In this document: piece after piece, positions 46,493-51,013 of the stretch
How positions within the stretch are numbered: position 1 is the stretch's first letter
Layout of the letters: each line of letters begins with the position of its first letter
DNA from: Klebsormidium nitens
Lineage: Eukaryota > Plantae > Klebsormidiophyceae
DNA length: 64,000 nt
Direction of reading: 5' to 3'
Assembly: GCA_000708835.1 (NCBI GenBank)
Contig: DF237176.1
Coordinates: 62,001 to 126,000, forward strand
The notes under the pieces: model-generated
Databases searched by the model: none
The model's input: the letters and a program-made list of their open reading frames with translations, nothing else
What the model was told of the DNA's origin: nothing
Made by a program: the position numbers and the translations under genes

Positions 46493-46964
46493 TTACAAAC
46501 TCTAGAAGGGTTTTCCTAATCAACCCCTCGGGAAATGTGAAGCAGGCGCATGCTCCAAAGCAATTGATGACTCCCGCATGAATGTGCGGGCCTGGGGTGA
46601 AGTTAGGCGAAGCGCAATCCGAGGAGGGGCCAGAAAAACGACAAAACTTCAATCGAGGTGTTGTGTGGTTCTCTTCTCTTCCGCGAGTTATTCGTTCGTC
46701 AAGTCTTCACGTAATTATAGATCTTAGCTGGCACGGACTTTGTAGTAAGATTCACGAGAGAAGCCCACATGCACTCTTAGGGCGCACGCCAAAAAAGCTG
46801 ACTGGAGACGTGACCACCCGTGCGGAGAAGATATGCCGCTCGTCTCTCGCGTGCGGCTTGGGCCTGCGCTCCAGATTCCTTAAACTTGCAAGAAGCTGCC
46901 TCCTCAAAGACGTTGGATCCAAGCAAACCAAGGATCTTCTTCCTGCGCGGTTTGCAACAGGCTC

Positions 46965-49900
46965 ATGAAAAGGTCATGCTTAGGGCGCCCTTCGTGTACG
47001 AGCGCGAGGAGAGAGGAAGCAAGGAGCAACCTGGAGCTTTGCCTGGGGGGGGGTTGCAACATCGAATTTTGTCAAAGGCACGGAGAAGAGTTGAAGTGGG
47101 AGGCGCACATTTGCTTCCGATCCTTTTTAAGCTTTTCAGTGCTTCGATTGACATCCTTCCCTACTACGGAAAGAGAGAATCTATTTGAGAAGCTCTGAGC
47201 ATCTTTTCAAGGGTTTGTTTGGCACGGGAGCATCTTGCCATGGGAGTTCTTGCCCAGCAGTGCTTCAACCCTAACTGCCGAAGGAGGTCCCCTGGGGATG
47301 GACCGTGAGCAGAGTCTGCCAATTGAACCTCTCATTTCTTGGGACCAAATCATAGTCATGATGATCTCCTTGAAGCAAGGTTTTGATTTGGAGGGAGGAC
47401 TTTCAGTGTTTTCAAGTCGTTGCATTGTGGCATCCTTAGTTGCGATCCTGAGCTGTTTGTCATTCAAATGAGCTTTCTTCCTTCATCCTTCTTGGAGGAA
47501 GTTCAGTTCTGTCTGCAATTATTTGGATGCTGGATACAAATGTTACTGTGACGTGCCCTCTACTTCAGAGCTTCGTGGGGCTTACTTTTGCTTCCTTGCT
47601 GTGCTCCATCATCTATAAAGTTCTTTGCTTCAATGTCAATACAAGCATCTCAACCTTGCAAATTCATCTGATTCAAGTCTGATAATTCCCGGCTCTTCCA
47701 ATCTAAAAGTTTGAAAAATATATGCATCTTGGAAATAAAATCAATCCAGGGGTAGTAATCTTTTTTCAAAAAGATTGGGGTTGTCTGGTGTCTCTCTTCA
47801 TTTAATCAATTTTCGAATTGAGAATTTACTTGGAACAACCTTACACCAGACTCCGCATTTAGTAACGCCAAAGACATATCGATTCTCTTGTCGTAAATTT
47901 CAGGTACCGAATGGAAGTAACTGTAGCACTCTCCCGACTTATTCTTCCATTGGTGCACTGTTTGCTGAAACGATCGCACAACCGCAGCCCTAACTTCTAA
48001 AAGTTCAATGTATCTTTCTGACTATCTTCAAGTCACAGCGCCAGGATTTGTACCCATGCATTGTTTTTAGACATCCTCCTGGATTCGTGCAGAAATATAC
48101 CCCCTATCTCTGCAGCACTTGCCGATGGCACGTTCGAAACTACGGCTCTGAGGAAGAGCCGCAGAATGTGACTCTCTGCAATGCGTGCAAGATCAACTTT
48201 GACCAGGTGAGACGCCTTGCATCCAGAACCTATCGCAGGTCTTCAAAGTGATACTGGAAACCAGAGCTGTCCTGAGGCCAGCAGCGTTATCCAGGGGGGA
48301 ACTCTATAACATCTCGATTTCAATGCAGAAGCATTTCTCGTTCTCTGCAACTTTGAGGAACTGGGATGGCATTGAGCGAGCGAGCTTGAAGGCAGGATTT
48401 TGGCTGCTGACGGATGAGGAGCTTCGTATCAACATGAAAGAAGCTTCGAACGCAGAAGCCCCTGACAAGACTGTCTTTCTCTCGACCGTTTCACTTTTTT
48501 CAACACGAATCTTTTCAATCCTTTGCGAACCGCCGCCATCCACTAATTCCTTGAACTGCAGAGGAAGTACTGCCCTTACTGCGTCCAGATCTACCGGGAC
48601 AAGGACCCGGACAACTTTGACGGCAAAGAGGTGAGCAACATTCCGACAATGTAAGTCTCAGATAGATGTCTCTGATGAAGGAGAAACTGAAGCACTTCGG
48701 TCGGCATGCTGCAACCAATTGGAGTGGACTAGTGTCTACGATCGCAGCCAGGTACAGAGCACCACCTGGTTTCAAGGATTAAGCCACCTTGCATTCTTTA
48801 TTCTCAATTATTCTCGATAATGTGAACAGATACGAGATTATGATGCTGACTGTTCCTTTGCTCTTCAAAACAGTGGCGCGGCTGCGACACGCGCAGCTGC
48901 CGACGGTGGGTCCACGTTGAGTGCGAGGAGACGGCCGCCGGGGGACCGCTAAACCCTCGCGAGGTTTACATCTGCCCCACGTGTCAGCAGGTGAGGAGAG
49001 GCGCGCGGCAGCATCCCGACGAGTCCAAGTCTTTCCTACTTCTCAACCGGAAGGGCTCAGTTCTCGCAAGAATCAATCTGCGGTTGCAAACTTCTGGAGT
49101 GCAGAAATCTAGTTCAGATCACGTGCTTCAATGTGAGGAGACAGCCACCTGCCTCTTGGAGCAGTCATGTTCTGGGTCACCAGATCCTCAAATGTACGAC
49201 CTGTTTGAAAGCAAACTCTTGTTGATAAACCTGAAGATGTTCAACCTGCGCTCCAAATTGTAGCGCACGTTTGGTACGAACATCCTTGGGCGCCTCCTCG
49301 TTGTCGCGAATCTGTGACCTCTTTCTTTATCAGACGTTTCCTCTTACTCATATCTTTCTTCTCAGTATTATCTTAGCCCTACCTATTGTATCTTCTTCTT
49401 GTTTCTATTTCGACTCCGTCAAACTTATAGCGCACTCTACGCAGAACAAGTGCGCGACGCGCAAGCGCGACAAGCGCCCTGCGCGCAGCTCGATCAGCCC
49501 GCGCTCTTCGCTGCACTTTCCGGCGGCGTTCAGCAGCGACGAAGGAGGGAGCCGAGCGACCGGCGCCCAACGCGCGGACTCCGAAGAGGTGACGTCTCCT
49601 TCGAAGCTGACAGAAGGGCATGAAAATGAGAAACTCAGTTCTCATCTGAGAGCGCACCTGAAGCTTGTTTCAGAATCGTATCGCCTACCAGATCTGGGAC
49701 GGCGCTTTTGGTGACAAGGCCTCGACCGGACGGTCGATCTTCTCTGCCAAAGGAACAAGGATACTTAGTAGCGAGTCGTGGCACGCTTCTGTGCATCGTA
49801 GAATGAGACTTTGACGGGACAAGTATGACCACTTAAAGGAAACGTTTGCTGCGCCATGCACTTGATTGTCGCGGAGCTTTCAAGTCAGTGACGGCGATTG

Positions 49901-51013
49901 CTTCATTTTGCAGTTCAACGAGTACAGCAAGAGGTCTCCCGGCGTCGACCTTTCCAAGCTCGAGGTGAAGAGATTCCTTCAATTTTCTCTCGATGCCGCC
50001 TATCTCGACGGCTCAGCCGCGAGCCACCAGAAGTCTGTGAGCCCTTGTTATGGATACTCCGCGTGTGGCGGGGTCGCTCTATCCTGTTGCACCGCGGACT
50101 TGGAGATTTGATGCAGCAAAATTCTTATTTTCCCAGGCGGACCGCAGACTTCTGTGATTGGCGTGGGATCACTAAGTAATCGTGTCTCCATATTTAGAGT
50201 TCCAATCACCCCCGTTTGGCTCGAACCCCATCCAAAACTCTGTCCTCACGCGATAAAGCTGCCGTAGGTTTCTGCACTGCGCCTGTTTTGAGTCCTTGGT
50301 CAAGCAACCATAAAAAATAGCCTTTCGTAATCCTTTCCAGGCGTCCTCTCTGAAGCGCTACAAGCGCACGTTCCGGCTGGTGGAGCCCCCGGCCGGGAAG
50401 GACAGCGAGCGGCTCATCCCGGTCGTCGAGGAACACTTCGCGGCTCAGGTGAAGCTTCCTTCTTCTTGCGGCTCGTTTTCAAATATTTGACGAACAGAAT
50501 TGGGATTAAGGATGCGTGCGGCACGGTTTTAGTCTAAAAAGGTGCTAAACGACTCTCAGATTCGCTCAGAAGATCGGTGACAAGTGAGGAGAAGAGTGCG
50601 TTCGTATCATGCAGACAACGACTTTGTGCATAAAGTGACATTCACGCGCAGGGCGTTATGAGGATGCCCATTCACGCGCAGGGCGTTATGAGGATGCCCA
50701 TTCCTGAGGAACTGGTGATGCCGACCACGATACTCCTTCAGACTGGATTTTCGCATCGTGCAGGAAAGTGGACAGACAGGCTCCCTTGCGAAGCAACCGT
50801 GAAAAGTCGTTGAGCAAAGTCGATTTAATCGTTTGTTTGATGAGCGTCTGATTGGTAGTAGAATGGAGATCGGACGTTTTGTTCCCCTTGGTCATTCTTG
50901 GTGACACTGCCGATTATTCAATCCAGGTTGTTCAAGAAGCCGAGACCCTTCTCTCGTTTGCACATTCGGTGAAGCTCAGGGCAGCCTGCCGAACACCCGC
51001 TGACGACGAATAG
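46965..51013 (+). CDS. Zinc-finger/PHD-finger protein with C-terminal SAP30 Sin3-binding domain; 5' end uncertain
   Basis: Exons (~46893 or 46965)-47095 (tentative), 48116-48206, 48562-48630, 48874-48990, 49445-49588, 49914-49964, 50341-50448, 50927-51013; phases join. PHD C4HC3 pattern: YCPYCVQIY...WRGCDTRSCRRWVHVEC...YICPTC, preceded by GATA-like TLCNAC. C-terminus VDLSKLEASSLKRYKRTFRL...LIPVVEEHFAAQVVQEAETLLSF resembles SAP30/AFR1-2. Confidence 0.8.
50639..50703. repeat. Perfect 30-bp tandem duplication in an intron
   Basis: ttcacgcgcagggcgttatgaggatgccca at 50641-50670 and 50671-50700. Confidence 0.95.

Follow-up and report, generated by a model that had tools for sequence, protein, structure and literature searches.

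We identified in Klebsormidium nitens an intact, strongly conserved gene that fuses a GATA-like zinc finger and a PHD finger to a SAP30-type Sin3-binding domain. The gene lies on contig DF237176.1 (assembly GCA_000708835.1) and was analyzed within a window of 64,000 nt (positions 62,001-126,000 of the contig), of which it occupies positions 47240-51013 on the + strand. The translation of its eight GT-AG exons matches letter for letter a deposited protein of 243 amino acids (record P0001, 'Putative PHD zinc finger containing protein [Klebsormidium nitens]'), which was found by an exact-word search with the linker exon. More than 10 species have orthologs with 50-55% identity across >90% of the length, which places this architecture far beyond chance. 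From the predicted domains, we consider it probable that P0001 is a nuclear subunit of a Sin3-histone deacetylase (HDAC) complex whose zinc cassette binds histone H3 methylated at lysine 4 (H3K4) and tethers the deacetylase to chromatin carrying this mark. The C-terminus would dock on the PAH3 domain of a Sin3-like scaffold, making the protein a subunit of an RPD3/HDA19-type deacetylase complex. The N-terminal ~115 residues form a compact zinc cassette, with a divergent GATA-type finger packed against a canonical C4HC3 PHD, and this cassette would recognize methylated K4 on the H3 tail. In this way, P0001 would directly recruit the RPD3/HDA19-type deacetylase to chromatin marked by H3K4 methylation. 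A direct link between a reader and a Sin3/HDAC adaptor can reasonably be inferred from this arrangement of domains.

Gene structure

An earlier note on this DNA, made from the letters alone, had described positions 46893-51013 as one phase-consistent open reading frame (ORF). The region does hold a single gene, but the gene is spliced and no single reading frame stays open across it. Its coding sequence runs from the ATG at 47240, upstream of which there is an in-frame stop at 47186. The ~350 bp between the start first claimed and the coding sequence (46893-47239) are non-coding 5' flank or untranslated region, and a Pfam scan of the two long frames in this interval returned no meaningful match. 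All seven introns are GT...AG; intron 1 is in phase 2, introns 2-7 are in phase 0, and the frame continues across every exon junction without a stop. Position 48116, taken in the note as a boundary, coincides exactly with the acceptor of exon 2. We searched the exon pieces singly and joined them only for the identity check against P0001, the record used for all whole-protein searches. The exons are as follows:

Exon 1, 47240-47304, + strand: residues 1-21 plus 2 nt; start codon and first GATA-like knuckle (C8-x4-C13)
Exon 2, 48116-48206, + strand: residues 22-52; second half of the GATA-like finger, TCRWHVRNYG...VTLCNACKINFDQ, with TLCNAC
Exon 3, 48562-48630, + strand: residues 53-75; first half of the PHD finger (C56, C59, Y63, F71), by alignment to MLL1 PHD3
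Exon 4, 48874-48990, + strand: residues 76-114; second half of the PHD finger (W76, C79, C84, W87, H89, C92, C109, C112)
Exon 5, 49445-49588, + strand: residues 115-162; basic Ser-rich linker with RKRDKRP
Exon 6, 49914-49964, + strand: residues 163-179; start of the SAP30 Sin3-interaction domain (VDLSKLE), by alignment to the domain of human SAP30 (PDB 2LD7)
Exon 7, 50341-50448, + strand: residues 180-215; SAP30 Sin3-binding core, SSLKRYKRTFRL...HFAAQ (Pfam E 1.1e-7 for this exon alone)
Exon 8, 50927-51013, + strand: residues 216-243 and stop codon (51011-51013); last SAP30 helix, EAETLLSFAHSVK

The TLCNAC that ends the Cys-rich segment pointed out in the note is in exon 2, and the first two cysteines of the N-terminal zinc module are in exon 1, an exon that the note had not defined. 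Support for exon 1 comes from the N-terminal motif MxxxQxC.N..C, which is conserved in the orthologs, and from the end of the exon, which is the same in Marchantia paleacea. Two other acceptors for exon 2 (48071 and 48093), either of which would yield a canonical 'CSTC' C-x2-C knuckle, were rejected because the orthologs keep QxC.N..C..SPGDGP joined to TCRW and only 47240-47304 spliced to 48116 gives P0001. The stretch at 48093-48115, read in frame 0 through the exon 2 acceptor, spells KYTPYLCSTC and mimics the C-x2-C knuckle of a GATA finger; it is intronic, and the real first knuckle is the C-x4-C of exon 1.

A PHD finger with aromatic residues at putative cage positions

Residues 53-114 are a genuine PHD finger, as judged from the ligand pattern, the profile match to MLL1 PHD3 and the fold. 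The C4HC3 ligands expected from the note's reading are spread over exons 3 and 4 (C56, C59, C79, C84, H89, C92, C109 and C112) and all eight are invariant or nearly so across 75 homologous cassettes. A profile of these 75 sequences matched MLL1 PHD3 at E 2.6e-8, the closest solved PHD by sequence profile. The exon 4 piece alone matched the Pfam PHD family at E 0.0033, and 61 of the 75 cassettes did so at E<=0.01. In MLL1 PHD3, the methyl-lysine cage consists of Tyr1576, Tyr1581, Met1585 and Trp1594 (PMC8022399). Residues Y63, W76 and W87 of P0001 align with Y1576, M1585 and W1594, respectively, and F71 may correspond to Y1581, with which it aligned in the pairwise alignment only. When aligned to the BPTF PHD, W76 falls on Y23 and W87 on W32. 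Y63, F71, W76 and W87 are all invariant among the orthologs and a further aromatic, Y55, was counted at the cage positions. The resemblance of this PHD to MLL1 PHD3 and BPTF and the aromatics at these putative cage positions make binding of methylated H3K4 the most likely function. The finger differs from its MLL1 (KMT2A) and BPTF counterparts in its context, because it is preceded by a GATA-like finger, is not followed by a bromodomain and is joined to another effector partner.

A zinc cassette shared with VAL proteins

The two fingers of P0001 are one cassette, homologous to the PHD-like domain of Arabidopsis VAL1 and VAL2. A first AlphaFold2 (AF2) model of the whole protein, computed from 12 sequences, was too poor (predicted local distance difference test, pLDDT, 45.9) and was replaced by a model of residues 1-120 from 75 sequences (pLDDT 81.8; predicted template modeling score, pTM, 0.70). 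The best whole-length match to the latter in the PDB was the AtVAL2 PHD-like domain (5Z28; Z 5.3, 87 of 98 residues), to which the 75-sequence profile also aligned over residues 5-112 (E 2.8e-6). Matching VAL2 over the whole length by both structure and profile indicates that the fingers form one unit. The C-terminal part of the model overlays many PHD fingers and its N-terminal part overlays the GATA1 and AreA fingers (1.8-2.4 Å over 41-42 residues), at a Z of only ~3. In Foldseek searches of the PDB with the same model, the top rows were the PHDs of ING4, BPTF and MLL1 bound to H3 trimethylated at K4 (H3K4me3), none of them at E<=0.001, a common outcome with zinc domains this small. The ESM Atlas contains several clusters with the same cassette (TM 0.76-0.79) and, as less similar matches, extended PHDs of methyltransferases of the ATX and KMT2C types; a feature search of this atlas gave just one PHD cluster, below threshold.

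Several results weigh against an H3K4-methyl reader that contains a GATA-type finger. P0001 scored 16.7-18.5 bits against Pfam PHD (PF00628), below the cutoff of 24, and was below threshold for PHD_Oberon too. The loop from Y63, the first cage Tyr, to W76, the Trp of the beta-strand, is four to seven residues longer than in MLL1 and BPTF (depending on the alignment), which leaves the fourth cage residue, F71, ambiguously aligned. Exon 2 matched Pfam GATA (PF00320) at E 0.0033 and 17.4 bits, below the cutoff of 26.8. As is to be expected of zinc domains this small, the Z-scores from the structural comparison are modest. Further, the PHD-like domain of the VAL2 type has been reported to act in dimerization and silencing and not in H3K4me3 reading (PMC7383879).

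The last point raises the alternative that P0001 is a Sin3-HDAC subunit whose cassette works as in VAL proteins, serving as a platform for dimerization or other protein-protein contacts rather than as a reader. We regard this as unlikely, although no other alternative fares better. It is favored by the VAL2 domain being the best match to the whole cassette and by the requirement of the VAL1 PHD-like domain for dimerization (PMC7383879). In the profile alignment, however, the first CxxC knuckle is missing from VAL2, as are two cage aromatics (KRLHCGC, compared to RRWVHVEC in the K. nitens-type family), whereas the K. nitens-type family keeps all eight ligands and the aromatics invariant or nearly so. 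The VAL proteins (HSI2/HSL1; PDB 5Z28 and 5YUG) share with P0001 the succession C-x-N-x-x-C ... W ... LCxxC followed by a PHD-type finger, and the whole cassette can be aligned. They also carry B3, CW and EAR domains but lack a SAP30 domain; the Pfam scan of P0001 gave neither B3 nor CW. Thus, P0001 shares a module with the VAL proteins but is not a member of their family. Judged from the profile alignment, the VAL 'PHD-like' domain seems related to the GATA-like plus PHD cassette but degenerate, having lost the first PHD knuckle and two cage aromatics, which may explain the unclear histone-binding status of the VAL domain. The cassette is also found at the N-terminus of proteins with CW and ARID domains and together with Myb or PX domains (P0058, P0087, P0101, P0110, P0146, P0027 and P0130), a range of partners that marks it as a mobile chromatin module. 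Its pairing with CW recalls the PHD-like, B3 and CW domains of VAL1.

The GATA-like finger

The label 'GATA-like', which the note had given to the N-terminal module, is plausible from remote homology and fold, whereas the K. nitens finger itself stays under the Pfam GATA threshold. Spanning residues 6-52, the finger has the pattern C-x4-C-x10-C-x18-C-x2-C. Its overall spacing (C-x4-C-x29-C-x2-C) departs from the canonical C-x2-C-x17-18-C-x2-C of GATA fingers and the Pfam scan of whole P0001 gave no GATA match. Yet in related protist cassettes the same position is occupied by textbook GATA fingers (CxNCGT..TPQWRKGW...LCNACGLKY). Pfam GATA matched 26 of the 75 homologous cassettes (best E 2.7e-11), and C-x4-C variants such as P0077 exceeded its threshold. 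Aligned alone against canonical GATA fingers with hhalign, the streptophyte finger reached a probability of 64% (E 6.7e-5).

These matches bear on a second alternative, in which the GATA-like finger binds DNA sequence-specifically and P0001 is a DNA-binding recruiter of Sin3-HDAC, similar to the GATA-like Ash1 of the yeast Rpd3L complex, with the PHD as an auxiliary. The above-threshold relatives, the overlay on GATA1 and AreA and the conservation of R25, W26, R29 and N30 would all fit such a role. Canonical GATA fingers use a basic C-terminal tail for DNA binding. In P0001, however, the PHD starts 9 residues past the last GATA cysteine and leaves no room for such a tail; the sub-threshold Pfam score, the hhalign probability of just 64% and the non-canonical spacing of the first knuckle also speak against it. 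We therefore find sequence-specific DNA binding improbable, and more so than a VAL-like platform.

The SAP30 C-terminus and the basic linker

The C-terminal ~70 residues of P0001, encoded by exons 6-8, are a SAP30-type domain. The Pfam check of this claim of the note returned SAP30_Sin3_bdg (PF13867) over residues 178-231 with an E value of 2.3e-12 and 47.4 bits, well over the cutoff of 22.2. A profile of 12 orthologs matched 66 residues of the Sin3-interaction domain (SID) of human SAP30 (E 8.8e-10) in PDB 2LD7, an entry for the complex with Sin3A PAH3, and matched yeast Sap30 weakly. With a SAP30-type SID at the C-terminus, docking on a Sin3-like PAH3 is the most likely mode of action. As in human SAP30 and SAP30L and in Saccharomyces cerevisiae Sap30, the protein is small, with a zinc-binding N-terminus, a basic linker and a C-terminal SID. 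It differs from them in that its N-terminus carries a GATA-like finger and a full PHD instead of the C2CH SAP30 zinc finger of animals; the Pfam family of the latter, zf-SAP30, did not match P0001 at E<=1. A protein whose SAP30-like C-terminus has ceased to bind Sin3 and that acts in another chromatin complex, or alone, could be imagined, as SAP30 domains occur in several plant families with mostly unstudied partners. The strong match to a human SID solved with Sin3A PAH3, and the binding of SNL2, SAP18 and HDA19 by Arabidopsis AFR1 and AFR2, which carry the same domain (PMC3760768), make this very unlikely.

Between the two halves of the protein, exon 5 encodes the basic, Ser-rich linker with the RKRDKRP motif that the note had reported. 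The linker is poorly conserved except for RK.R and had a pLDDT below 50 in the 12-sequence AF2 model. It is probably a nuclear-localization or flexible hinge region. Animal SAP30 has a basic hinge and, by analogy, the RKRDKRP linker probably serves nuclear import or non-specific contact with nucleic acids.

Orthologs and evidence for one old gene

Orthologs with the same three parts and the identity and coverage given above were found in liverworts (Calypogeia, Marchantia paleacea and Riccia), mosses (Sphagnum and Physcomitrium patens) and algae (Chara braunii and Chlorokybus). In the M. paleacea gene, all seven K. nitens intron positions recur. An intronless contig of 1314 bp carries an entire ORF of 237 amino acids, a close relative of the moss sequences; since the genomic genes contain seven introns, the contig resembles a transcript. 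Two contigs from ENA metagenomes (L004:1947-2762 and L005:56-871) hold an intronless ortholog between closely packed genes of a compact genome. Shared intron positions and intronless whole ORFs demonstrate that the fusion is one old gene and not a merged annotation. The possibility that annotation joined a small PHD gene to a neighboring SAP30-like gene, for which one could cite the poorly conserved exon 5 linker, is essentially excluded by the identical architecture in more than 10 species, by the intron positions common to M. paleacea, by the uninterrupted ORFs on the intronless contigs L001 and L004/L005 and by the continuous frame across the K. nitens junctions.

When 1.84 billion representatives were searched exhaustively with a profile, 1076 matches at E<=1e-3 were obtained, 143 of them at E<=1e-10. 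The best matches, together with the proteins already fetched, were sorted into three classes using local domain hidden Markov models (HMMs) and name look-ups. The class with the full architecture includes Closterium (Zygnematophyceae), the CRuMs protist Diphylleia rotans and contigs from Logan/ENA. A second class comprises short proteins with SAP30 only from chlorophytes such as Pyramimonas, Polytomella and Cymbomonas. The third has the GATA plus PHD cassette without SAP30, with named members from Heterolobosea, ciliates and Rhizaria; it is in this class that the cassette is joined to CW and ARID, Myb or PX domains. Neither the ortholog search nor this profile search yielded a three-part member from vascular plants. 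The motifs are so conserved that a tracheophyte ortholog should share the search words, and loss of the three-part protein in vascular plants is therefore well grounded, though not proven, on these sequence searches. A broader scenario, which we put forward tentatively, is that the protein is a single-polypeptide reader-adaptor of streptophyte algae and bryophytes whose cassette would bind H3K4me2/3 and target Sin3-HDAC without ING proteins; it would go back to the ancestor of the green or streptophyte lineage, perhaps even further if Diphylleia is included, and would have been lost in vascular plants, with the cassette as the source of the degenerate VAL1/VAL2 PHD-like domain.

Some members of the family have features of their own. 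The L004/L005 ortholog has an insertion of 25-35 residues rich in Ala, Gly and Asp in the PHD loop between the third and fourth cysteines. The D. rotans protein (P0028, 522 amino acids, from a transcriptome) has a CDNAYC stretch, a long insert rich in Ser, Thr and His, the second knuckle and PHD, and a SAP30 domain. The CDNAYC stretch may be the first GATA-like knuckle; the local HMM of the finger gave no score. P0028 reflects either an ancient architecture or contamination by algal prey. A genomic ORF on a Logan contig of 13.5 kb (P0019) contains an exon 4 ortholog, WRNCDTRSCRRWVHVKCEE...YICPTCQQ, that runs into the intron; this ortholog, in a close relative, indicates that a second Klebsormidium-like genome carries the gene.

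Relationship to AFR1/AFR2 and ING proteins

Arabidopsis AFR1 and AFR2, which bind SNL2, SAP18, HDA9 and HDA19 (PMC3760768), resemble P0001 in being green-lineage proteins of about 220-250 amino acids with a C-terminal SAP30 Sin3-binding domain. The note was correct that they have no PHD. Proteins of the AFR type (e.g., P0158 and P0202) combine the SAP30 domain with an N-terminal match to PUB62-63_C (PF23112, the C-terminal domain of U-box proteins 62/63), which is neither a zinc finger nor a PHD; conversely, PF23112 was absent from the Pfam scan of P0001. The AFR-type family is large (more than 1000 matches) and extends from chlorophytes to angiosperms, including Physcomitrium, Selaginella, ferns, conifers and many flowering plants. 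Both types coexist in mosses and, of the two, vascular plants keep only the separate AFR1/AFR2-type family. In a tree of the SID, whose 68 columns are too short for deep relations and give weak support, the streptophyte PHD type clustered with the short SAP30 proteins of chlorophytes and away from the AFR proteins of land plants. The deepest split is unsupported, and one AFR-type group of chlorophytes fell on its PHD-type side. We take the grouping of the PHD type with the short chlorophyte proteins as a hint only.

In animals and yeast, H3K4me3 reading for Sin3-HDAC is performed by separate PHD subunits, the ING proteins and Pho23. The role proposed here for P0001 would be analogous to that of ING1/2 and Pho23, that is, a PHD that reads H3K4me3 and positions Sin3-HDAC. 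ING proteins, however, are subunits of their own, in which an ING domain at the N-terminus is combined with a PHD at the C-terminus, whereas the K. nitens PHD is part of the SAP30-type subunit itself and the Pfam scan of P0001 detected no ING domain. If true, a reader built into a SAP30 subunit would be a simpler wiring of Sin3-HDAC to H3K4-methylated promoters than a separate ING or Pho23 subunit.

The note's view of the architecture as unfamiliar from model organisms is too strong: the model bryophyte P. patens has it, as does M. paleacea, in both cases under the automatic annotation 'PHD-type domain-containing protein' with PF13867, and it recurs in Chara, Chlorokybus and Closterium. It was nevertheless not found in vascular plants in these searches, and a full-text literature search for SAP30 with PHD, AFR, bryophyte or Klebsormidium retrieved no paper describing a PHD-SAP30 family. 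Hence, the fusion is real and uncharacterized, yet its orthologs are in model bryophytes and in databases under automatic names. Our interest is moderated by the fact that all of the domains are known, PHD fusions are common among chromatin proteins and the orthologs are auto-annotated. Still, presence in the tractable Physcomitrium and Marchantia and seeming absence in vascular plants offer a clean test of what the reader contributes and of its replacement. Furthermore, the homology of the cassette to the VAL1/VAL2 PHD-like domain suggests how a plant silencing module of unclear biochemical function may have originated.

Within the K. nitens gene, intron 7 also contains a perfect tandem duplication of 30 bp at 50639-50703, with 2.2 copies of the unit CATTCACGCGCAGGGCGTTATGAGGATGCC.

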